Source: Octopus bimaculoides
Taxonomy: Eukaryota
Assembly: GCF_001194135.2 (NCBI RefSeq)
Contig: NC_068982.1
Location: forward strand, 188,547,732 to 188,611,731
Length of the DNA stretch: 64,000 nt
Direction of reading: 5' to 3'
Shown here: piece after piece, positions 3,701-62,560 of the stretch
Layout of the letters: every line of letters starts with the position of its first letter
Numbering within the stretch: position 1 is the first letter of the stretch
Translations under genes and position numbers: made by a program
Notes under the pieces: generated by a model
The model's database searches: none
Told to the model about the DNA's origin: nothing
What the model saw: only the letters and a program-made list of their open reading frames with translations

Positions 3701-3800
3701 TTTGCAGACCCCAGAGAACCATTTGCAGACTCCCCTCAACAGCTTCCACTGAAAGAAGAAAACTGTGACATGGTTTTGTTTCCTGATTGCGACTATTAAT

Positions 3801-4002
3801 TAGAAAATTACTATTTTTAAATCTCACAAGAGATATTCAGCAACAGTACTTTGGAGCAAAGATTATTTGCCAACATATTCGAAAATATAAGGACACAGAT
3901 CGTGTCATATAGCCAGCTGGAGATGACGTCTCCTGGGGCTAAATTGCAGCAACATTCGTCCTAAACTAGGACTGCCATGTTATGTTGGCAAACAATCTCT
4001 AC
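3801..4002. mobile_element. Family D element, truncated (inverted arm + forward 3' part, no hammerhead)
   Basis: 13-bp TSD tgc(g/a)actattaat at 3788-3800 and 4003-4015. Confidence 0.85.
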
Positions 4003-4222
4003 TGCAACTATTAATGTCTATAGGAAATCTATGAATGCAACTTTGACCGTGTAATTCAATTCCTTTAATGTTGTTAATTGTCCATCAAAAAATAGAATTG
4101 ATATTTTCTANNNNNNNNNNNNNNNNNNNNNNNNNNNNNNNNNNNNNNNNNNNNNNNNNNNNNNNNNNGCAGGGTTTTTATATCCTCAACAAAAAGTATT
4201 TGATTTTTGCTCTATAAAGAGA

Positions 4223-5732: not shown

Positions 5733-6017
5733 CTTACAGTTCTATATTTAAGAGGTGAAGAATTATGTACATTAATTACATTTGACAGGGCATATGGCAT
5801 AATGGTTAAGAGCACGGGCTACTAACCCCAAGATTCTGAGTTCGATTCCAAGCAGTGACCTGAATAATAATAACATTGAAAAATACCTTAGGAATAAGAA
5901 CCCAGGTTCAAAATTTCCCCAAGATACCTGATGAAGGCTGGAGGGTATATCAGCCGAAACGTTCTGTTAACAACAAACAAGATGAGGACAAATATCTGTC
6001 AAGTGTAAATAATGTAA
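5733..6017 (+). mobile_element. Family C hammerhead/tRNA-head retroelement (inverted 3' arm + forward copy) in last RCAN intron
   Basis: 19-bp TSD atacttgt(g/a)ctataaacat at 5714-5732 and 6018-6036; A box 5795-5805; B box 5838-5849; hammerhead 5923-5968 with damaged stem I. Confidence 0.85.
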
Positions 6018-6089
6018 ATACTTGTACTATAAACATGTTGTTTGTCTTCAGAGTCTCTTTCTTTCAACTCTCTTGTTTCTCTTCAACAG

Positions 6090-9067: not shown

Positions 9068-9660
9068 GTCATCATCATCAACGTCGTTTAACGTCCACTT
9101 TCCATGCTGACATGGGTTGAATGGTATGACTGAGGGGCTACACCAGGCTCCAATCTGATTTGGCAGAGTTTCTACAGCTGGATGCCCTTCCTAACGCCAA
9201 TCACTCAGAGAGTGTAGTGGGTGCTTTTTACGTGCCACCGGCATGAGGGCTAGTGAGGCGATACTGGCAATGATCATGCCCAAAAGGTGTGTTTTACATG
9301 CCATCTGCACAGAAGCCAGTAAGGTGATGCTGGCAATGATCACACTCGAATGGTGCTTTTTACGTGCCACCTGCATGGGAGCCAGTGACCGGCCCTGTTA
9401 ATGATCACGCTCAGATAGTGTTTTAAACGTTCCACTGGCACGAGTGCCAATCAGGTGGTACTGTCATCAGCCATGTCAGCGATTTTGATCTCACTTGCCT
9501 CAATGGGTCTTCACAAACAAAGTTTATTGTCCAATGATTGAAGGGTACTCTTAAATGGGCTGGTTATACAGCACTGGCATAGGCCCCGGGTTATGGTTGC
9601 ACTTGGCTTGTTGGGTCTTCTCAAGCACAGCATATCTCCAAAAGTCTCAGTCACTAGTGT
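9068..9660 (-). mobile_element. RTE 3' UTR/tail copy
   Basis: Same structure as 4223-4830. Ends approximate. Confidence 0.85.
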
Positions 9661-11004: not shown

Positions 11005-11376
11005 GCTTCCGTGCTAGTGGTATGTAAATAGCACCATTTGAGCATGATCATTACCAGTGTTGCCTTACTGGCACATTAGAAAATCATTTGAGCGAGGTCG
11101 TTGCCAGTGCCGCTGGACTGGCTCCTGTGCAGGTGGCACGTAAAATACACCATTTCGAGCGTGGCCATTGCCAGTACCACCTGACTGGCCTTCGTGCTGG
11201 TGGCACGTAAAAGTACCCACTACACTCTCGGAGTGGTTGGCATTGGGAAGGGCATCCAGCTGTAGAAACTCTGCCAAATCAGATTGGAGCCTGGTGTAGC
11301 CATCTGGTTCACCAGTCCTCAGTCAAATCGTCCAACCCATGCTAGCATGGAAAGCGGATGTTAAACGATGATGATG
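11005..11376 (+). mobile_element. RTE 3' UTR/tail copy
   Basis: Three tandem units plus tail plus GAT repeats. Confidence 0.85.
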
Positions 11377-13088: not shown

Positions 13089-13387
13089 CGTACATTATTT
13101 ACATTTGACGGATATTTGTCCTCATCTTGTTAAGAGCACAGAATACTAACCCCAAGATTCCAAATTCGATTCCAGGCAGTGACCAGAATAATAATAATAA
13201 TAACAGCATCGAAAAATACCTTAAGAATGAGAACCCAGGTTCGAAATGTCCCCAAGACACCTGATGAAGGCTGGAGGGTATATCAACCGAAATGTTGTGT
13301 TAACAACAAACAAAATGAGGACAAATATCCATCAAATGTAAATAATGTACATAATTCCTCATCTCTTAAACATAGAAATGTATTATT
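13089..13387 (+). mobile_element. Family C element inserted in a TTAA-type MITE
   Basis: 10-bp TSD ATTATCTCAA at 13079-13088 and 13388-13397; short inverted arm then forward copy; hammerhead 13256-13301 with two substitutions. Confidence 0.85.
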
Positions 13388-13971: not shown

Positions 13972-14115
13972 TCCAAGTTCGATTCCAGGCAGTAACCTGA
14001 ATAATAATAATAATAACAACAGCAACATCGACAAAACCTTAAGAATGAGAACCTAGGTTCGAACTTTCTTCAATAAACAAGATGAGGACAAATATCCGTC
14101 AAATGTAAATATTGT
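13972..14115 (+). mobile_element. Family C fragment with the hammerhead segment deleted
   Basis: B box, (AAT)n and 3' tail are present, but the ccccaagacacCTGATGA...GAAAC block is absent. Ends approximate. Confidence 0.75.
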
Positions 14116-14368
14116 ATCGATCGTATTATCGCCATGTGCAAGTCTTCTTACGCCTTCAGAGTATCTCAACAGACATGAGAGAGCATCACAGTATATTCAC
14201 TGGGTCATTTAGTGGGTAATTAAACCTGCCCCATGATAAAAACTGGTGGGAACACAAACCACCTCCAGTGCTTGAAAATGACCACATCTTACTCCTTTGG
14301 TACCTACCTGTTCAAACTGACCAGAAAGGTAGATGCAAGTAGACCAGACATTATATTGAAGGATCTTC
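14116..14368 (+). mobile_element. R4/Dong-like non-LTR fragment (end of zinc knuckle + restriction-like endonuclease)
   Basis: Frameshifted translation C-SLLTPSEYLNRHERASQYIHWVI*...WWEHKPPPVLENDHILLLWYLPVQTD...SRPDIILKD. Confidence 0.8.
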
Positions 14369-23350: not shown

Positions 23351-23675
23351 ATTATTTACATTATTTACATTTGACAGATATTTGTCCTCATCTTGTTTGT
23401 TGTTAACACAACGTTTCGGCTGATTTACCCTCCAGCCTTCATCAGTTCAAACCTGGCTTCTCATTCCTATTTTCTAATATTATTATTTGGAGCCTGGTGC
23501 AGCCTTCTGGCTCACCAGTCCTCACTCAAACCATCCAACCCATGCCAGCATGGAAAGCAGACGTTAAACGACGACGATAATGATGATGATTATTATTATT
23601 CAGGTCACTGCCTGGAATTGAACTCGGAATCTAGGGGTTAGTAGCCTGCACTCTTAACCACTGCGCCATATGCCC
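23351..23675 (-). mobile_element. Family C element interrupted by an RTE 3' tail
   Basis: Reverse-complement tRNA head at ~23590-23675 and hammerhead at 23405-23450; the RTE tail sits at ~23488-23590 inside the (TAT)n tract. Confidence 0.8.
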
Positions 23676-24468: not shown

Positions 24469-24796
24469 CTGAAACCAAAACAAAAAAAAAAAAAAAACAC
24501 CNNNNNNNNNNAAAAAAAAAAAAAAAACACCTCAAAATATGGTAAATAACTTTATGTTCACCCCTAACAAATACATAATTTAATAGGGAGTTAACCTACT
24601 CAGAGCTGGGCCCTTGTGTCTAAACTTTACTCTATTTGAACTCCTGAGCAAAAAAAACACAATTACATTTCTAAATCTCTCAGAGATTATCTTGCTGCTA
24701 CTGCATAAATCTCTGAGAGATTTAGAAATATATTATTTTCTATTTCAAAAATCAGTGAATGCATATGTATGTATATATATATATATNNNNNNNNNN

Positions 24797-25000
24797 TTTC
24801 AAAAGCGAATAGGCATGGACAGCTAGCAAGCCATGCTACTCCAGACTGATGATGAGCAATGACTCTGAAACCAGTCTCTGGATGCTGGCTTTGCAGGGTG
24901 GAGGTGCTTGTCTCCACTTTGAAAACATAAGGACACAGGAAATGTGTCAAGTCCAACAGGAAACGGTGTTTCTTAGGGCTAAATAACAGTAGCATTCTTC
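24797..25000 (+). mobile_element. D-related hammerhead element (diverged subfamily)
   Basis: The hammerhead is followed by gaaaacataaggacacag...gggctaaataacagtagcatt, alignable by eye to the family D 3' module. The 5' end abuts an N gap. Confidence 0.7.
24841..24881 (+). ncRNA. Type I hammerhead ribozyme motif, D-related family, predicted cleavage after GUC (C24876)
   Basis: CCAGA-CTGATGA-T-GAG(CAATGA)CTC-T-GAAA-C(CA)G-TC-TCTGG. Stem I is perfect, both core boxes are intact and the triplet is GUC. Stem I extends past an internal loop (GCAAGCCA with TGGCTTTGC). Confidence 0.8.
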
Positions 25001-25250: not shown

Positions 25251-25677
25251 ATTATTTACATTTGACAGATATTTGTCCTCATCTTGTTTGTTGTTAATAC
25301 AAGATTTCGGCTGATATACCCTCCAGCCTTCATCAGGTGTCTTGGGGAAATTTCAAACCTGGGTTCTCATTCCTAAGGTAATTTGTGATGTTGTTGTTGT
25401 TATTATTATTATTAATCAAGTCACTGCCTGGAATCGAACTCGGAATCTTGGGTTTAGTAGCCCGCACTCTTAACCACTATGCCACATGAATAATAATGAT
25501 AACATTGAAAAATAGCTTAGGAATGATAACCCAGGTTTGAAATTTCCCCAAGACACCTGATGAAGGCTGGAGGGTATATCAGTCGAAACGTTGTGTCAAG
25601 AACAAACAAGATAAGGACAAATATCTGTCAAATGTAAATAATGTAAATAAATTCCTCATCTCTTAAATATAGAACTG
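25251..25677. mobile_element. Family C head-to-head inverted dimer
   Basis: 12-bp TSD TAGGCCTTGCAT at 25239-25250 and 25678-25689; minus arm with tRNA head, plus arm lacking the head; two hammerheads. Confidence 0.9.
25552..25597 (+). ncRNA. Minimal type I hammerhead motif, family C, intact copy
   Basis: Stem I GACAC/GTGTC is perfect, stem II has one G-U pair and the core is intact. Confidence 0.72.
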
Positions 25678-25879
25678 TAGGCCTTGCATGTTTACAAAAC
25701 AAAGTGCTGTGTTTATCACACGCTTGATTGATTGCAAAATCATTTTTCTTCTTTTTTTTGGTTAAAAACAAAAGTAAACAACAGCTGACTCCAAAGTTGC
25801 AACAAGGACCAGTTCGATTATTTTTAGTAGTTTATCTCTTTTAACAGGAATCCAGAAGAGATTTCGTTTATGCTATTCC

Positions 25880-28864: not shown

Positions 28865-29005
28865 TTATCCGGCAGAAACACATGTCGGATTGGAATTTAA
28901 TGGGAATAATCCTGTAATAGGGGACAATGCTACTGTTGTTTACAGCCCCAGGAAGACATCTCCTCCAGCTGGCTAACGACACACTGTCTGTGTCCAATTA
29001 GTATT
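28865..29005 (-). mobile_element. 3' module of another D-related subfamily
   Basis: The reverse complement reads ggacacagacagtgtgtcgttagccagctggaggagatgtcttcctggggctgtaaacaacagtagcatt, similar to the D tail. Ends approximate. Confidence 0.6.
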
Positions 29006-30920: not shown

Positions 30921-31389
30921 TTACAAAATTACTATTTTTTAAATCTCACAACGTAAGACATTCAGCAACAGTACTTTGGAGTAAAGTACTGTTTACTCCA
31001 GTACTTTGGAATAAAGTACTGGAGTAAAGGTTGTTTGCTGACATAACATGGCGGTCCTGGTTTAGGACTAATATTGCTGTAATTTAAAAATAGTAATTTT
31101 CTAATTTATAGATCAGTGACTAGTTGTTACTTTGAAAACTATATATTTCAAACGGGAATTTAGCAGTGCCACCTCTAGCCAAACAATTATTCTGTGCTGA
31201 TGAAGGGAAATAACGATATACAGACATTGTTTTGAACTGAGTGGGGGTACTAGATTCCATTGTTGAAAAGTACAAGGACACAGATCGTGTCGTATAGCCA
31301 GCTGGAGACGATGTCTCCTGTGGCTAAATTACAGCAACATTCGTCCTAAACCAGGACTGCCATGTTATGTTGGCAAACAATCTTTACTC
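30921..31389. mobile_element. Family D element (inverted arm + forward monomer, hammerhead partly deleted)
   Basis: Perfect 13-bp TSD CAATAATAGACCA at 30908-30920 and 31390-31402; CTGTG-CTGATGA-AGGGAAATAAC at 31192-31214, then a deletion. Confidence 0.9.
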
Positions 31390-31845
31390 CAATAATAGAC
31401 CAGGTCTCAATAGATTTAGACCTTATTTAATTACATAGATGTAGTGAGACAATTTAGATATGTTCCATTCTGTATTTCCCTATATATTCCTGTGCATCTG
31501 CAAATTCTCGGTGGCCACACAAGACACGTATAAACATACAAGAATTATGATAGAAGGACAGGAACAAGTGTCTTGCTGTAGAAGTTGGAAAGGAAGAAAA
31601 GGGAAAAGATGATGATAAGGTGTCAAGGGACACCTTTAAGGTACAAGAATGAGATATATGGTCAACAGGTGTGGTCTGTGTGCAACGTTATGATGCAAAT
31701 CACTGCTTGATCTGCTAGAAACAGTAGCTAAATTTCCTTCATCTTACCAAACTAATAAACAATATAATTGGAGAGGTGGTAGGGCTATTAAAATAAAATG
31801 ATAACAATGATAATTTCCAATTAGATAATTAGAAAGAAAACTTAC

Positions 31846-32678: not shown

Positions 32679-32810
32679 CTTTTAGAATAGAAACAAAAGG
32701 GGAAATATATAAACAATAACAGAGAACATGGGAAATATGTTTATAAGACAATATGACAAAAAGGCAAAACACTGTTTTAGAAGAAAATGAAGACAACAGA
32801 ACTGGATTTT

Positions 32811-33289
32811 CTATATTTCAGAGATGAGGAATTTATTTACATAATTGACATTTGACGGATATTTGTCCTCATCTTGTTTGTTGTTAACACAGCGTTTCGG
32901 CTGATATACCCTCCAGCCTTCATCAGGTTTCTTGGGGGAAATTTTGAACCTGGGTTCTCATTCCTAAGGTATTTTTTGATGTTATTATTATTATTATTAT
33001 TATTCAGGTCACTGCCTGGAATCGAACTCGGAATCTTGGGGTTAGTAACCTGCACTCTTAACCACTACAGGCATATGGCATAGTGGTTAAGAGCACAGGC
33101 TAACCCAAGATTCCGAGTTCAATTCCAAGCAGTGACCTGAATAATAATATCGAAAAATACCTTATGAGTGAGAAACCAGGTTCAAAATTTCCCCAAGACA
33201 CCTGATGAAGGCTGGAGGGTATATCAGCCGAAACGTTGTGTTAACAACAAATGAGATGAGGACAAATATCCGTCAATTGTAAATAATGT
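32811..33289. mobile_element. Family C near-full-length palindromic dimer
   Basis: Two ~240-bp arms meet at ~33070; TSD-like agaactg(g/t)atttt at 32798-32810 and 33290-33302. Confidence 0.9.
33197..33242 (+). ncRNA. Minimal type I hammerhead motif, family C, consensus-intact copy
   Basis: GACAC-CTGATGA-A-GGCTG(GAGGGTATAT)CAGCC-GAAA-CG-TT-GTGTT. Palindromic ACGU stem III; GUU triplet. Confidence 0.75.
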
Positions 33290-34361
33290 AGAACTGTATT
33301 TTGTATAAATGTTTTAAATTGTAACAACTGTACAATCACTGTCCTAGCAGTACTTTAGCATGTTTTGTTACACATTATATAACACATCTCAAAGCCTGTC
33401 TTTTAGGTGAAGAGAAAAGCTGTTTCATTGTTTACATAAAGTCTAAGATCCATATAGAGAACTGATGTGTAAACATCAAAAATAAATCCACAGTAATTAG
33501 GAATTCAATTAATAAATAGCAGTTAATTAAAACTTCAACACATTGTTACAGTGAAGTAAATCCAAGAGGGACAAAACATATATCCTATTTTTGAGTAAAA
33601 ATAGCTTTGAAATTAATTATGTATCAAAATTACGTAATTATACATTTAGTAATGTTTATCTTAATGAAACAGCTGTTGAATACAAAGTATGAAGTACATG
33701 TAAAATTTACGCTTTCCTGCTTATATTCTTAAGTTTCATTCCTTAACAGTGTTTAATGTTGTTCTTCCTGTTGTTCTAATTATATCATCATTAAATTAAC
33801 TTCTAAGAGTAATTATATTAATTACTTTCTGCACTCTACACACTTTGTGCTGTTTGTTTGAGGTAAACTCCTGTGTTCAATCACTCCAGGATTGAAAACG
33901 CATCAAAGAGTCTGAGATCTTTCTATTGAGCCATTGACGTCATTGGATACAGAATCCTAAAACTGCTTCCAACAGTTTGGTCAAAGTCTTACTCCCAGCA
34001 AAGAACAGACCATGGAATCGGTACCACAAATGGTTTACTTATGTTGAACATAGGATTCTAGATTCCTCTACCAAGTCTCAAGTAGGTTTTGCAATGAGAA
34101 CCAACAGAAATCAGTTTACTAGCAAAGTCAGATGGTGATGTCATTTTAAACTTCCACGGTGTTTAGCACCAGGTCAACAGAGCAGACCTGTAATCAAAGA
34201 CACCCCAGCCATGACCATCCCCCGTTTTTCAGGCATTATATATCCTGGATGTGAAGGTGCATGGCATAGTGGCTAGGATGTTGCAACGACAACCTAAAGA
34301 CCAAGGTTTCAATCCCCAGAACAAGTAACACGTTTTGTTCTTGAGCAAAACATCAGTCAAT

Positions 34362-35371
34362 CAGAAAACTACTATTTTTAAATCTCACACCGAGAGATAT
34401 TCAGCAACAGTACTATGGAGTAAAGACTGTTTGCTGGCATAACATGGCAGTCCTGGTTTAGGACGAATGCTGCAGTAATTTAGCGCCAGGAGACATCATC
34501 TCCAGCTGGCTATACGACACAATCTGTGTCCTTATATTTTCAAACAAGGGAATCTAGCACCCCAACTCAGCTCAAAATAATATCTGTGTATCACGATTTC
34601 CGGGTTATTTCCTTTTATTAGCAAAGAATAATTGTTCAGCTGATGANNNNNNNNNNNNNNNNNNNNNNNNNNNNNNNNNNNNNNNNNNNNNNNNNNNNNN
34701 NNNNNNNNNNNNNNNNNNNNNNNNNNNNNNNNNNNNNNNNNNNNNNNNNNNNNNNNNNNNNNNNNNNNNNNNNNNNNNNNNNNNNNNNNNNNNNNNNNNN
34801 NNNNNNNNNNNNNNNNNNNNNNNNNNNNNNNNNNNNNNNNNNNNNNNNNNNNNNNNNNNNNNNNNNNNNNNNNNNNNNNNNNNNNNNNNNNNNNNNNNNN
34901 NNNNNNTCTCACACCGAGAGATATTCAGCAACAGTACTATGGAGTAAAGACTGTTTGCCGGCATAACATGGCAGTCCTGGTTTAGGACGAATGCTGCAGT
35001 AATTTAGCGCCAGGAGACATCATCTCCAGCTGGCTATACGACACAATCTGTGTCCTTATATTTTCAAACAAGGGAATCTAGCACCCCAACTCAGCTCAAA
35101 ATAATATCTGTGTATCACGATTTCCGGGTTATTTCCTTTTATTAGCAAAGAATAATTGTTCAGCTGATGAAGGGAAATAACCCGGAAATTGTGATACACA
35201 GATATTGTTTTGAGCTGAGTGGTGGGTGCTAGATTCCCTTGTTCGAAAATATAAGGACACAGATCGTGTCATATGCCCGGCTGGAGACGATGTCTCCTGG
35301 GGCTAAATTACAGCAACATTCATCCTAAACCAGGGCTGCCATGTTATGTTGGCAAACAATCTTTACTCCAT
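34362..35371. mobile_element. Family D palindromic insertion (true length ~490 bp; inflated by duplication across a gap)
   Basis: 10-bp TSD ATCAGTCAAT at 34352-34361 and 35372-35381; the arms meet at ~35160. Confidence 0.85.
35159..35201 (+). ncRNA. Family D hammerhead core, 5' strand of stem I lost at inversion junction
   Basis: CTGATGA-A-GGG(AAATAA)CCC-G-GAAA-TT(GT)GA-TA-CACAG; the expected CTGTG 5' strand is replaced by TTCAG. Confidence 0.6.
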
Positions 35372-42017: not shown

Positions 42018-42281
42018 TTATTCTCAAACGTGTGATAATGGTATAAATAGCGTGATCAGGATAAATTATCCATAGCGTCTTATAAAGCTAAATTTATAAG
42101 TTCTAAAACAGCAGAAGAATTCATTACTGGGCAGTTTAGCTTAATGGTAAAGCACTTGACGCGTAATCACAGGGATGTGAGTTTGAGTCTCATGGCTGGC
42201 CGGTGACGTATTTTTCTGCAATGTATGGATAATTTATCCTGTTCATGCTATTTATTAGCATTATCATGCGTTTGATAATAA
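42018..42281. mobile_element. MITE with ~57-bp TIRs enclosing a tRNA-like sequence
   Basis: Arms 42018-42074 and 42224-42281 are ~88% complementary. Confidence 0.8.
42130..42201 (+). pseudogene. Degenerate tRNA, anticodon CGT (Thr-like)
   Basis: D stem GCTT/AAGC, anticodon loop CG-CGT-AA, T stem GTGAG/CTCAT with loop TTTGAGT; acceptor stem has a mismatch and the anticodon stem a 1-nt bulge. Confidence 0.65.
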
Positions 42282-56705: not shown

Positions 56706-57756
56706 CTAGGCAACCAAGTCTGTAGTGGGGTGGGGTTGCACTGGGAGTGTAGCGACTAGAGTAAGAATAGCCTGGACAAAGTTCAGGGAGCTCCTACCTC
56801 TGCTGGCAACTAAGGGCTTCTCGCTCAGGGTGGAAGGTAGACTGTATGATGCATGTGTGCAAACAGTTATGCTACACAGCAGTGAAACATGGGCCATGAA
56901 TGCTGAAGATATGCATAGGCTTGAAAGAAATGAAGCTAGTATGATCCACTGGATATGTAAAATCAGTGAGCATACACAACAGAGTGTAAGTGCCCTGAGA
57001 GAAATGTTAGACATAAGAAGCATCAAATGTGGTGTGCAAGAGAGGTGGCTGTGCTGGTATGGTCATGTGTTACGTATGAATGAAGACAGCTGTATGAGGA
57101 AGTGCCACTCCCTAACTGTGGAAGAGGTAGACCCAGGAAGACAAAGGATGAGGTGGTGAAGTATGACCTTCGAACATTGGGCCTCACAGAGGCAATGACA
57201 GGAGACCAGGACCTTTGGAGATATGCTGTGATTGAGAAAACTCAGCAACTAAAGCGAGATTGCAGCCATGCATGTCCAGCCCCGTTAAGAATACCCCTGA
57301 TGCATTGTGCGATATGATATGCTTGACAAGACCAGTTGAGTCAAGTAAAACCAATATCGTAGCTGTGGCCAGTTCCCCCTGCACATAAAAAGCACCATCC
57401 AAATGTGGTCGATGCCAGGTCCACTTGACTGGTTCCTGTGCCAGTGGCATGTAAAAAGTGCCAACCGAACGTGGCCAATGCCAGTATCTCCAGACTAGTT
57501 CCTGTGCCGGTGGCACATAAAAAGCGCTATCCAAACGTGGTCGATGCCAGTGCCGCCTGACTGGCTCCTGTGCCGGTGACACATAAAAAGCACCCACTAC
57601 ATTCTCAGAGTGGTTGGCGTTAGGAAAGGCATCCAGCTGTAGAAACACTGCCAAATCAGACTGGAGCCTGGTGCAGCCACTGGCTTTACCAGAGCTCAGT
57701 CAAAGCATCCAACCCATGCCAGCATGGAAAGTGGACGTTAAACGATGATGATGATG
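56706..57756 (+). mobile_element. RTE LINE 3' portion: RT C-terminus, 3' UTR with tandem hairpin units, (GAT)n tail
   Basis: GCTGSVATRVRIAWTKFRELLPLL...LHSSETW...CWYGHVLRM, then the conserved tail ccaacccatgccagcatggaaagtggacgttaaacgatgatg. Confidence 0.93.
57323..57600 (+). repeat. Tandem array of ~63-66-bp units in RTE 3' UTR
   Basis: Four successive (gtgg)cacataaaaagcacc...gatgccag...gactggct..tgtgcc units. Confidence 0.9.
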
Positions 57757-58399: not shown

Positions 58400-59890
58400 T
58401 CATCATCATCATCATCGTTTAACGTCCGCTTTCCATGCTAGCATGGGTTGGACGATTTAATTGAGGACTGGTGAAACCAGATGGCAACACCAGGCTCCAA
58501 TCTGATTTGGCAGAGTTTCTACAGCTGGATGCCCTTCCTAACGCCAACCACTCAGAGAGAGTAGTGGGTGCTTTTACGTGTCACCCGCACGAAGGCCAGT
58601 CAGGCAGTACTGGCAACGGCCACGCTCAAAATGGTGTATTTTNNNNNNNNNNNNNNNNNNNNNNNNNNNNNNNNNNNNNNNNNNNNNNNNNNNNNNNNNN
58701 NNNNNNNNNNNNNNNNNNNNNNNNNNNNNNNNNNNNNNNNNNNNNNNNNNNNNNNNNNNNNNNNNNNNNNNNNNNNNNNNNNNNNNNNNNNNNNNNNNNN
58801 NNNNNNNNNNNNNNNNNNNNNNNNNNNNNNNNNNNNNNNNNNNNNNNNNNNNNNNNNNNNNNNNNNNNNNNNNNNNNNNNNNNNNNNNNNNNNNNNNNNN
58901 NNNNNNNNNNNNNNNNNNNNNNNNNNNNNNNNNNNNNNNNNNNNNNNNNNNNNNNNNNNNNNNNNNNNNNNNNNNNNNNNNNNNNNNNNNNNNNNNNNNN
59001 NNNNNNNNNNNNNNNNNNNNNNNNNNNNNNNNNNNNNNNNNNNNNNNNNNNNNNNNNNNNNNNNNNNNNNNNNNNNNNNNNNNNNNNNNNNNNNNNNNNN
59101 NNNNNNNNNNNNNNNNNNNNNNNNNNNNNNNNNNNNNNNNNNNNNNNNNNNNNNNNNNNNNNNNNNNNNNNNNNNNNNNNNNNNNNNNNNNNNNNNNNNN
59201 NNNNNNNNNNNNNNNNNNNNNNNNNNNNNNNNNNNNNNNNNNNNNNNNNNNNNNNNNNNNNNNNNNNNNNNNNNNNNNNNNNNNNNNNNNNNNNNNNNNN
59301 NNNNNNNNNNNNNNNNNNNNNNNNNNNNNNNNNNNNNNNNNNNNNNNNNNNNNNNNNNNNNNNNNNNNNNNNNNNNNNNNNNNNNNNNNNNNNNNNNNNN
59401 NNNNNNNNNNNNNNNNNNNNNNNNNNNNNNNNNNNNNNNNNNNNNNNNNNNNNNNNNNNNNNNNNNNNNNNNNNNNNNNNNNNNTTATGTTCAGCTTTTC
59501 TCTCAAGATACTTACACTCTGTCGGGTATGCACACTGACAATAGACATCCAGCGGAGCATACTGGCTTCATTCCTTGCGAGCTTACGCATGTCCTCAGCA
59601 GTCACAGCCCATGTTTCACTGCCATGTAGCATGGCTGTTCATACACATGTGTCATACAGTCTGCCTTTTACTCTGAGTGAGAGTCCCTTTGTCACCAGCA
59701 GAGGTAAGAGCTCTCTGAACTTTGCCCAGGCTATTCTTATTCTAGCAGCTACACTTTCAGCGCACCCACCCCCACTATTAACTTGGTCACCCTGATAGCG
59801 GAAGCTATCAACTACCTCTAGTTTTTCTCCTTGGAATGAGACAGAAGTTGTTTCCTGTTTGTTTACAGTATTTATTGCACCTGAACATCA
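58400..59890 (-). mobile_element. RTE LINE 3' portion spanning a gap
   Basis: CSGAINT...QGEKLEVVDSFRY...ARIRIAWAKFRELLPLL...LHGSETW on the minus strand; (CAT)n tail at 58400. Confidence 0.92.
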
Positions 59891-61435: not shown

Positions 61436-61822
61436 AAGCAAGTCAGCACATTTCACTTTTGATCAGGATGAAAACAAACTAAAAATAAAACCTCACACAA
61501 ACTCACCGATTTAGCAGCAGAGACCAGTACAGGGGATGAGAAACAACCAGCTTAAGGAGAAGGGAAAGTGGGACAGCTGGTGTGTTGTGTATAAATTCAT
61601 TGTATGTACTGTATACACCCTAATCAATTGCTGTCATAGATAAGTCAAACGATGACAACAACTGACAGGCTGAAGTAAGAGACAAATGAGAAAAAAAAAA
61701 AAAGAGAATGTTTTCTTTTTGTTTTTGCTTTTTAATTGCTTGTATAAACACAAGTATTGATTATTTTCGTTTGACCTTCATATTTTCTCAGGAAAGCTGG
61801 TGACGTGAATAGATTTACTTTT

Positions 61823-62469
61823 GTAGTAAAGATTGTTTGCCAACATAACATGGTAGTCCTGGTTTAGGACGAATGTTGCTGTAATTTAGCCCCAGGAGAC
61901 ATCATCTCCAGCTGGCTATACAACACGATCTGTGTCCTTATATTTTCGAACAAAGATCGTGTTGTATAGCCAGCTGGAGACAATGTCTCCTGGGGTTAAA
62001 TTACAGCAACATTCATCCTAAACCAGGACTGCCATGTTATGTTGGCAAATAATCTCTACTCCAAAGTACTGTTGCTGAATATCTCACGTTGTGGGATTTA
62101 AAAATAGTAATTTTCTAATTTATAGATTAGTGACTAGTTGTCACTTTGAAAATTATATATTTTGAACAAGAATTTGTCAGCACCACCTCTAGGCGAACAA
62201 TTATTCTGTGTTGATGAAGGGAAATAACCCGGAAATCGAGATGCACAGATATTGTTTTTGAGCTGAGTGGGGTTACTAGATGCCCTTGTTCAAAAATATA
62301 AGGACACAGATCATGTCATATAGCCAGCTGGGGACGATGTCTCCTGGGGCTAAATTACAGCAACATTCGTCCTAAACTAGGACTGCCATGTTATGTTGGC
62401 AAATAATCTTTATTCCACAGTACTGTTGCTGAATATCTCTCATTGTGAGATTTGCAAATAGTAGTTTTC
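61823..62469. mobile_element. Family D element: inverted arm + 1.45 tandem monomers (period 354 bp)
   Basis: 12-bp TSD AGATTTACTTTT at 61811-61822 and 62470-62481; direct repeat starts at 61955 and 62309 with the hammerhead between them. Confidence 0.92.
62206..62248 (+). ncRNA. Family D hammerhead, degenerate copy
   Basis: CTGTG-TTGATGA-A-GGG(AAATAA)CCC-G-GAAA-TC(GA)GA-TG-CACAG; stems are intact but C3>U and position 17 = G. Confidence 0.6.
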
Positions 62470-62560
62470 AGATTTACTTTTATTTGTTCAGAATGGAGAG
62501 CTTTAGGGTTTTATAATATTTTAAACATTCAGTTAACAACAAAAGTTATCTTTTACAGAA

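Follow-up and report, generated by a model that had tools for sequence, protein, structure and literature searches.

The window analyzed here is a 64-kb stretch of Octopus bimaculoides DNA (contig NC_068982.1), a gapped eukaryotic scaffold with 13 N runs and 39% G+C. At positions 61811-62481 it holds an insertion, named c62, of a short non-coding repeat that we call family D and whose consensus contains a hammerhead ribozyme-like motif. The unit reference of the family is the 354-nt segment at 61955-62308 (38% G+C), which was compared by BLAST with the window and provides the unit coordinates used below. The insertion is bounded by a target-site duplication (TSD) and has the following layout.

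61811-61822: left copy of the TSD, AGATTTACTTTT, 12 bp, an exact repeat of 62470-62481
61823-61953 (-): inverted, 5'-truncated arm, reverse complement of unit 332-354 plus 1-109 (93% to the unit by BLAST); by alignment of ends, its outer (left) end is the 'short' 3' terminus ...CTTTACTAC
61954-62469 (+): forward arm, 516 nt, about 1.45 unit turns (unit 354, 1-354, 1-161)
62196-62256 (+): hammerhead-like motif with extended helix I
62303-62317 (+): conserved hairpin GACAC-loop-GUGUC just 3' of the hammerhead, one arm of which has decayed to AUGUC in c62
62309-62419 (+): 3' module of the second unit turn (unit 1-111), with hairpins GGGGAC..GUCUCC and GUCCU..AGGAC and, within it, the internal 'short' terminus site ...TTTATTCCA
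62420-62469 (+): 'tail' of about 51 nt between the short and the long 3' termini, ending ...AAATAGTAGTTTTC; in c62 it is present at the right end only
62470-62481: right copy of the TSD, AGATTTACTTTT, 12/12 identical to the left copy

An earlier, sequence-only reading of this DNA had described the duplication, the inverted arm and a forward unit whose start recurs 354 bp later, and all three hold. The repeat search pairs 61822-61953 with 62286-62417 (132 nt, 92% complementary) and 61820-61935 with 61950-62065 (116 nt, 92%), while the direct repeat of 61933-62122 at 62287-62476 (190 nt, 85%) has a start-to-start spacing of exactly 354. BLAST of the unit recovered the inverted arm, the partial second unit (unit 1-168 recurs at 62309-62476, 88.7%) and copies at four other places. 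The forward arm is unbroken where one unit passes into the next, as well as at the hammerhead site and the internal long-end site, and the divergence of each arm is about 5%. As had also been stated, the family lacks an open reading frame (ORF): in the trimerized consensus no open stretch exceeds 75 codons, the longest one being on the minus strand. Together the two arms make a palindrome (61862-62022) that draws sub-threshold Rfam matches to many microRNA precursor families (e.g., MIR7724, 74.5 bits against a cut-off of 100), which are hairpin artefacts; a microRNA precursor locus was considered for c62 and rejected. The locus, if transcribed, would give a double-stranded RNA of about 130 bp.

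We mapped every piece of family D in the window to unit coordinates and then inspected the flanks. This revealed four independent insertions, each a head-to-head pair of 5'-truncated copies with its own TSD of 8-13 bp. Inner junctions are given as inverted arm / forward arm.

3793-4007: insertion c38, TSD CTATTAAT, inner junction at unit 84 / 342
30921-31392: insertion c31, TSD approximately TAATAGACCA, inner junction at unit 42 / 142
34359..gap..35371: insertion c35, TSD ATCAGTCAAT, inner junction at unit 241 / 241
61823-62469: insertion c62, TSD AGATTTACTTTT, inner junction at unit 332 / 354

Both arms of each insertion are copies of one strand-specific 3' region, facing inward. Their outer ends fall into two sharp classes, a short one (...CTTTACTCCA(A), at unit 109-111) and a long one (...AAATAGTAATTTTC(TA), at unit 161-165), and all four insertions have exactly one end of each class. 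The short end of c62 is on the left, in the inverted arm, and its long end is on the right; in c34/c35, c38 and c31, the long ends terminate no more than 4 nt from one common point. The lengths of the arms vary and the inner junction is different in all four insertions, the latter excluding a transposon with fixed terminal inverted repeats. The insertions are old, since the arms of the same insertion differ by 7-12% and each arm is 3-10% away from the local consensus.

The length of the template can be read from two of these insertions. Besides c62, the segment 31082-31392 of c31 is independently continuous from unit 142 through 354 to 110. Hence, the D element closes on itself in 354 nt and was copied from a template longer than one unit. 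Since the forward arm of c62 exceeds one unit and is unbroken at the hammerhead site, its template was multimeric or circular. All four D arms that span unit 289|290 cross this site intact, so the template was either uncut or religated at the ribozyme site. The longest D copy in the 64 kb remains that of 1.45 units, with one hammerhead motif, the other insertions being shorter than one unit.

A few details of these insertions deserve mention. The segments 34359-34646 and 34907-35170, which flank the N run at 34647-34906, are 99.6% identical over 264 nt, and the two-sided repeat at c35 is almost certainly an unmerged assembly overlap rather than two insertions. The hammerhead copy at 34582-34628 was thus not counted separately, being an assembly duplicate. 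In the inverted arm of c31 (30987-31030, -), about 17 nt are duplicated exactly at the short-end site (...CTTTACTCCAGTACT TTATTCCAAAGTACTG...) before the tail begins, which may be a slip or a switch between two start sites. In c35, both arms are truncated at unit ~241, the foot of the extended helix I, and meet in a near-palindrome (GAATAATTGTTC, 35150-35161); this shared point may be a preferred stop or a joining point set by microhomology.

The hammerhead-shaped motif that had been noticed between the repeats is present (62205-62249), and its elements in c62 are these (all on the + strand).

62196-62201 and 62251-62256: distal helix AACAAU / AUUGUU, separated from helix I by internal loop UAU/U
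62205-62210 and 62244-62249: helix I, UCUGUG / CACAGA
62211-62217: core box UUGAUGA, with C3 mutated to U (62211)
62218 and 62231: A.G mismatch
62219-62230: helix II GGG/CCC with loop AAAUAA
62232-62235: GAAA
62235-62242: helix III region
62243: position 17, G (A in the consensus)

The other copies of the motif in family D lie at 31190-31225 (+), 35160-35205 (+), 35106-35152 (-) and, in the assembly duplicate, 34582-34628 (-). From the four insertions we derived a majority-rule consensus, UCUGUG CUGAUGA A GGG AAAUAA CCC G GAAA UCGUGA U A / CACAGA, in which helix I is extended by the UAU/U internal loop and the distal AACAAU/AUUGUU helix. It equals the consensus put forward in the sequence-only reading, distal helix included. 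It keeps the conserved core of the hammerhead (C3 U4 G5 A6 N7 G8 A9 / G12 A13 A14 / A15.1-U16.1 / H17) and is placed on the sense strand, with the short end about 175 nt downstream of it. The individual copies are damaged, each in its own way: c62 has U at C3 and G at position 17, and for these reasons cannot cleave; the inverted arm of c35 carries G5A and G8A; c31 has lost GAAA through a 9-nt deletion; and in the forward arm of c35, helix I is missing its 5' strand, lost where the two arms join. Judged by sequence, every D copy in the window is catalytically dead, and the case for the hammerhead therefore rests on the consensus.

To put numbers on this case, we applied a type I descriptor in a relaxed form, which asks for 5 bp or more in helix I, CUGANGA, 3 bp or more in helix II with 0-1 extra base on either side, GAAA, U16.1 and H17. 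Besides the D consensus, three intact motifs at other places in the window match it, at a chance rate of 0.006 matches per window (1,500 dinucleotide shuffles). The D consensus also passes the strict form of the descriptor, for which the rate is 0.0007 per shuffled window. Its loops 1 (UAU/U) and 2 (AAAUAA) resemble the canonical UAC/U and CAAUAA. The isolated hammerhead fold has an energy of -9.0 kcal/mol, versus -16.2 for an alternative fold, and the 354-nt monomer folds at -106.3 kcal/mol, versus -78.5 +/- 5.0 for dinucleotide shuffles (z = -5.6). With 2 bp and a tetraloop, helix III is short; two copies of it can pair between molecules in a duplex of 8 bp (AUCGUGAU x 2, -5.4 kcal/mol). Cleavage by D, if any, would probably need two ribozymes in tandem, a dimer mode that has been described for animal hammerheads with short helix III (PMC4209133, PMC7229834).

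A second source of evidence is a sister family, E, present as a single copy at 24797-~25060 (+), whose left side is cut by the N run at 24787-24796. It has an intact type I hammerhead at 24840-24882 (UCCAGA CUGAUGA U GAG CAAUGA CUC U GAAA CCAG U C UCUGGA), with U.U at the base of helix II, and a 45-codon ORF that starts from an AUG inside the CUGAUGA box (24849-24986). E is homologous to D from the ribozyme through the 3' end (local score 112, versus 23 +/- 3 for shuffles). Between the two families, whose background identity is about 72%, all 11 core bases are kept, while 6 of the 11 helix pairs are changed on both sides and none is broken; 92.5% of the cells are paired. None of 500 shuffles, and none of the slid registers, equalled the compensatory pairs in number, the paired fraction or the covariation score.

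We also built a covariance model, R1, from seven canonical type I hammerheads on unrelated metagenome contigs, and scanned both strands of the window with it, unfiltered. E and all D copies were among its top eight matches in the window, with these scores.

Family E: 44 bits
c62 (62200-62252): 33 bits, E = 6.7e-7
c35 forward arm: 22.5 bits
c35 inverted arm: 18.4 bits
c31: 11.3 bits

The training sequences came from a scan outside the window with a degenerate hammerhead pattern, which returned unrelated canonical type I hammerheads and chance matches and supplied both the training set and a control. Near-identical canonical type I hammerheads were found on the JGI metagenome contigs L011, L013, L014, L016, L017, L020, L022 and L026 (CCUAC GCACUG CUGAUGA GGRG CAAUWA CYCC GAAA CGCGCG U C CAGUGC UGG); L022 holds two of them, at 785-837 and 2139-2191, 1354 nt apart. 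These are presumably animal retrozyme DNA in environmental samples.

The region 3' of the ribozyme is conserved more widely. D, E and a third family, G, share three hairpins there (GACAC..GUGUC, GGAGAC..GUCUCC and UCCU..AGGA) with a few compensatory changes, and the first of them is also found, one pair shorter, in a fourth family, F. Family G (28880-29002, -) is a diverged, 5'-truncated relative, ~71-75% identical to D and E, that keeps the three hairpins and lacks the hammerhead region. Family F is a different, abundant repeat with a minimal hammerhead of the type found in Penelope-like elements (PLEs), with copies at the following positions.

5735-6020: family F copy
13091-13382: family F copy
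14072-14116: family F copy
23352-23672: family F copy
25251-25680: family F copy, intact hammerhead at 25552-25597 (+)
32809-33290: family F copy, intact hammerhead at 33197-33242 (+)

The F motif (GACAC CUGAUGA A GGCUGG AGGGUAUA UCAGUC GAAA CG U U GUGUC) carries one additional base behind A9; its helix II has 6 bp and includes G10.1-C11.1, and its helix III, of 1 bp, has a CG loop. Head-to-head insertion occurs in F as well, for example within a 12-bp duplication (TAGGCCTTGCAT) around 25251-25680, and in all four of its two-armed insertions a tail of about 35 nt is found at one end only. Its 5' part has good matches to the consensus of the RNA polymerase III A-box (TGGCATAGTGG) and B-box (AGTTCGATTCC), so that F may be a short interspersed nuclear element (SINE) mobilized by a PLE. 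A tRNA origin of its head was tried and dropped: ARAGORN and Rfam gave no confirmation, and the A-box and B-box consensus matches are what remains. In one F arm (33256-33300, +) the short end ...AATGTA is followed directly by GAACTG, the last tail bases, as if the body of the tail had been skipped.

The insertions of family D carry the signature published for those of PLEs. In PLE insertions, a partial tandem is joined by a neighboring copy that is inverted and 5'-truncated, and there is a tail of 30-40 bp, often on just one of the ends (Craig et al. 2021, PMC8557442). With the purified Poseidon protein of anole, both DNA strands are cut and extended (Frangieh et al. 2024, PMC11167929). The protein begins reverse transcription inside the RNA, at two neighboring sites that are non-homologous to the target and whose spacing equals the tail, with a hammerhead just upstream of these sites and the uncleaved RNA as main template (PMC11167929). 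D has the partial tandem, the inverted 5'-truncated neighbor copy and the one-ended tail. In D, too, there are two internal start sites at fixed positions, the targets are AT-rich, the duplication varies in length, and a sense-strand hammerhead lies upstream of the start sites. The differences are of degree in some respects: the tail has about 51 nt in D versus 30-40 nt in PLEs, and the hammerhead is about 175 nt from the first start site versus about 90 nt in the anole element. In other respects they are of kind, since the D ribozyme is of the canonical type I and not of the minimal PLE kind, which in the window is represented by family F, and since D, unlike autonomous PLEs, has no ORF for reverse transcriptase (RT) or GIY-YIG endonuclease. 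A regular-expression search found no YIGxT, GIY or YxDD context in any of the six frames of the window. With no RT or GIY-YIG motif in the window and no ORF in the unit, we regard D as non-autonomous.

The unit itself resembles the non-LTR (long terminal repeat) retrozymes of metazoans. It is short, non-coding and, at 38%, low in G+C, its 354 nt falling within the ~170-400 nt used to define them and close to the 350-390 bp of the retrozymes of the mussel Mytilus galloprovincialis (Cervera & de la Peña 2020, PMC7229834), another member of the Mollusca. It shares with them a type I hammerhead (6 bp in helix I, four positions and a loop of 6 nt in helix II, 2 bp plus tetraloop in helix III), a strongly self-paired RNA and duplications longer than 4 bp. 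It differs by its dispersed head-to-head pairs, with at most 1.45 units and one ribozyme per locus, and by the A.G mismatch in place of the 10.1-11.1 pair. Axolotl HHR_Amex2 and the amphibian satellite 2 hammerheads are also close: they have a unit of about 350 nt, the same short helix III with tetraloop, a likely action as dimers and, in Amex2 as in family E, a non-Watson-Crick pair (U.U) at the base of helix II, where D has A.G (PMC7229834). The amphibian repeats, however, are organized in tandem arrays of very large size (126,247 motifs in axolotl), and experiments have demonstrated both cleavage and circles for them (PMC7229834). Compared with Rfam RF00163, D has the same core (CUGAUGA...GAAA...UH), helix lengths, loop 2 (NAAUNA) and internal loop 1 (UAY/U), but it lies below the Rfam threshold, lacks G10.1-C11.1 and has a helix III that is shorter than in the Rfam consensus.

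Taken as a whole, c62 is probably an old, inactive insertion of a non-autonomous, non-coding retroelement that belongs among the metazoan hammerhead-bearing non-LTR retrozymes and was mobilized in trans by the RT and endonuclease of a PLE. Family D forms no arrays in these 64 kb, as retrozymes in the strict sense do, and has no ORF, as autonomous PLEs do; we therefore file it as PLE-mobilized, non-autonomous and retrozyme-like. The sequence-only reading had suggested a non-autonomous retrozyme or mini-PLE made from a circular or multimeric RNA. The non-coding unit, the PLE architecture in four of the four insertions and the longer-than-unit arm crossing the hammerhead site support it, and its hammerhead is supported by the predicted type I consensus, the covariation with E and the recognition by R1. 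The template could be a multimeric transcript, or an RNA circle resulting from self-cleavage by the hammerhead and ligation. The PLE protein would bind this RNA at the conserved hairpin module 3' of the ribozyme, which we infer to be a signal for binding and initiation, and its endonuclease would make a staggered cut in AT-rich DNA. With both DNA ends as primers, reverse transcription would then begin at two neighboring sites inside the RNA; both cDNAs, left incomplete, would be joined in the middle of the insertion, and gap repair would produce the TSD.

Several observations weigh against this reading. No intact ribozyme is found among the D copies of the window, and the consensus is based on only four insertions. 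In place of G10.1-C11.1, a pair called highly conserved in PLE hammerheads (PMC4209133), there is A.G in all D copies keeping those positions and U.U in family E. The covariation comes from a single comparison, D versus E. The R1 training set was fetched with a pattern derived from D and E, so that the core and the spacing of loop 2 are shared by construction and the test is independent only in part; the parts of the model that owe nothing to that pattern are helix I, loop 1, helix III and the closing stem. The sequence-only reading had proposed hammerhead searches. Rfam detects no hammerhead in the whole window at gathering, nor in the D and E regions at E <= 10, where it returned only sub-threshold microRNA and snoRNA look-alikes caused by the palindrome or by the CUGAUGA box. 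This negative counts for little, since canonical control sequences also miss the gathering cut-off: a textbook type I motif, one of the R1 training sequences, is recognized as Hammerhead_1 with 33.6 bits against a cut-off of 34 and is thus missed at gathering. Within the 64 kb, D has no tandem array with two or more hammerheads, as a strict definition of retrozymes demands, and the loci seen here could therefore not release a monomer. Finally, exact-pattern scans of viral contigs and metagenomes found no D-related sequence outside the window.

Other searches outside the window gave the following results. The same kind of scan of bacterial and archaeal genomes returned only ten chance 18-mer matches of D. 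In protein space, the 75-residue translation of the D consensus gave no candidate, and the 45-codon ORF of E, used as a query for an autonomous partner, gave four marginal matches without RT or endonuclease domain, which we took as noise. The 292-kb contig L030, which encodes a distant RTE relative, has no homology to D, E or F and no hammerhead.

Other explanations can be weighed on the same data. If the D copies were the 5'-truncated ends (pseudo-LTR) of an ordinary autonomous PLE, the 354-nt 'unit' would not be an independent family. Most PLE insertions are indeed 5'-truncated, with a single terminal repeat bearing a hammerhead (PMC4209133; bioRxiv 10.64898/2026.07.22.740005), and the three D insertions shorter than one unit fit both accounts. 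Yet c62 runs past its long end into the region upstream of the hammerhead and then into the 3' module again, all within 354 nt, and c31 is independently continuous from unit 142 onward. Moreover, no D ORF exceeds 75 codons, E has only its 45-codon ORF, and the frames of the window are devoid of GIY-YIG and RT motifs, all of which makes this explanation unlikely. We find it still less credible, indeed very improbable, that D is a miniature inverted-repeat transposable element (MITE) or foldback DNA transposon, with the arms as terminal inverted repeats and the hammerhead-like motif as an incidental feature. The long inverted arms of c62 (132 nt, 92%) within a direct duplication would suit such an element, as would the microRNA-precursor matches across the palindrome; but these matches are all far below gathering scores, the inner junctions and arm lengths vary, the duplications range from 8 to 13 bp, the tail is on one side only, and one arm is longer than the unit. 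L1-style twin priming was also considered for D and rejected: the 3' end is present in both arms, and poly(A) is absent.

A different objection accepts the mobilization by PLEs and concerns the ribozyme alone: the hammerhead could be a chance match or a relic that never cleaved RNA, D being then a 'mini-PLE' that lacks ribozyme function. For one real PLE, insertion in vitro is normal when the hammerhead is mutated, and transcripts ending at the cleavage site were not seen (PMC11167929), Naiad PLEs thrive without canonical hammerheads (PMC8557442), and the four site-spanning D arms were all copied from RNA intact at that site; the A.G mismatch and the missing Rfam match point the same way. Against this, the motif has a chance rate of 0.0007 per window, its core is fully kept while six pairs are compensated between D and E at ~72% background identity, and R1 gives it 33 bits in c62 despite two later mutations. 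A mismatch at the base of helix II is, besides, known in the active axolotl HHR_Amex2, and is thus compatible with cleavage in axolotl retrozymes (PMC7229834). Hence, we judge a hammerhead without function to be quite improbable, and retain the reading of D as a hammerhead-bearing, PLE-mobilized element.

This reading has a more ambitious form, which we advance tentatively and regard as rather doubtful. D and E would be the first canonical retrozyme-type hammerhead units with a full PLE integration footprint, their RNA circles or multimers serving as templates for rolling reverse transcription by a dimeric PLE enzyme, with its two protomers obliged to start at different sites. The footprint in question consists of the two fixed internal start sites, the one-ended tail in eight of eight insertions (D and F together), the inward-facing twin cDNAs, and the cDNA longer than one unit that crosses an intact ribozyme site. 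Were this form true, a sizeable share of the octopus 'SINE' and unclassified repeats would depend on PLEs and not on long interspersed nuclear elements (LINEs).

Both the retrozymes with hammerheads and the hammerheads of PLEs have been well documented in animals, a mollusc (the mussel) among them. We found no description of cephalopod retrozymes or PLE hammerheads in the searchable literature; in the giant-squid genome paper, 235 Rfam matches to Hammerhead_1 are listed and not taken further (PMC6962438). A 2026 preprint makes the case, on phylogeny in Xenopus, that retrozymes come from PLEs, and states that non-vertebrate, life-cycle and mechanistic evidence is lacking. In this context, ORF-less hammerhead units with PLE-specific insertion scars are direct structural evidence for mobilization by the PLE machinery. 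The added value is modest and lies in these scars, which link a hammerhead unit of the canonical type to that machinery. Repeats make up 66% of the O. vulgaris genome (PMC13282606), and abundant short repeats such as D, E and F, with a common ribozyme-plus-hairpin 3' module, bear on the classification of octopus repeats.

The window has a few other features of note. Its only Rfam match at gathering is a tRNA at 42130-42201 (+), with 30.9 bits (cut-off 29, E = 0.018) and no call by ARAGORN, which is probably a tRNA-derived repeat or pseudogene. Fragments of the C-terminal part of an RTE-like LINE RT lie at 56725-57159 (+) and 58574-59632 (-, interrupted by Ns); the only named relative of the former is an uncharacterised Octopus bimaculoides UniRef protein, with 77% identity over 44% of the query, which supports an octopod origin of the DNA, short of proving the species. 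Another abundant family recurring across the window is a repeat of 66-67 nt (GGTGCGTTTTACATGCCACC...), in arrays of 2-3.5 copies at 2147-2370, 9220-9386, 11085-11212 and 57381-57591.

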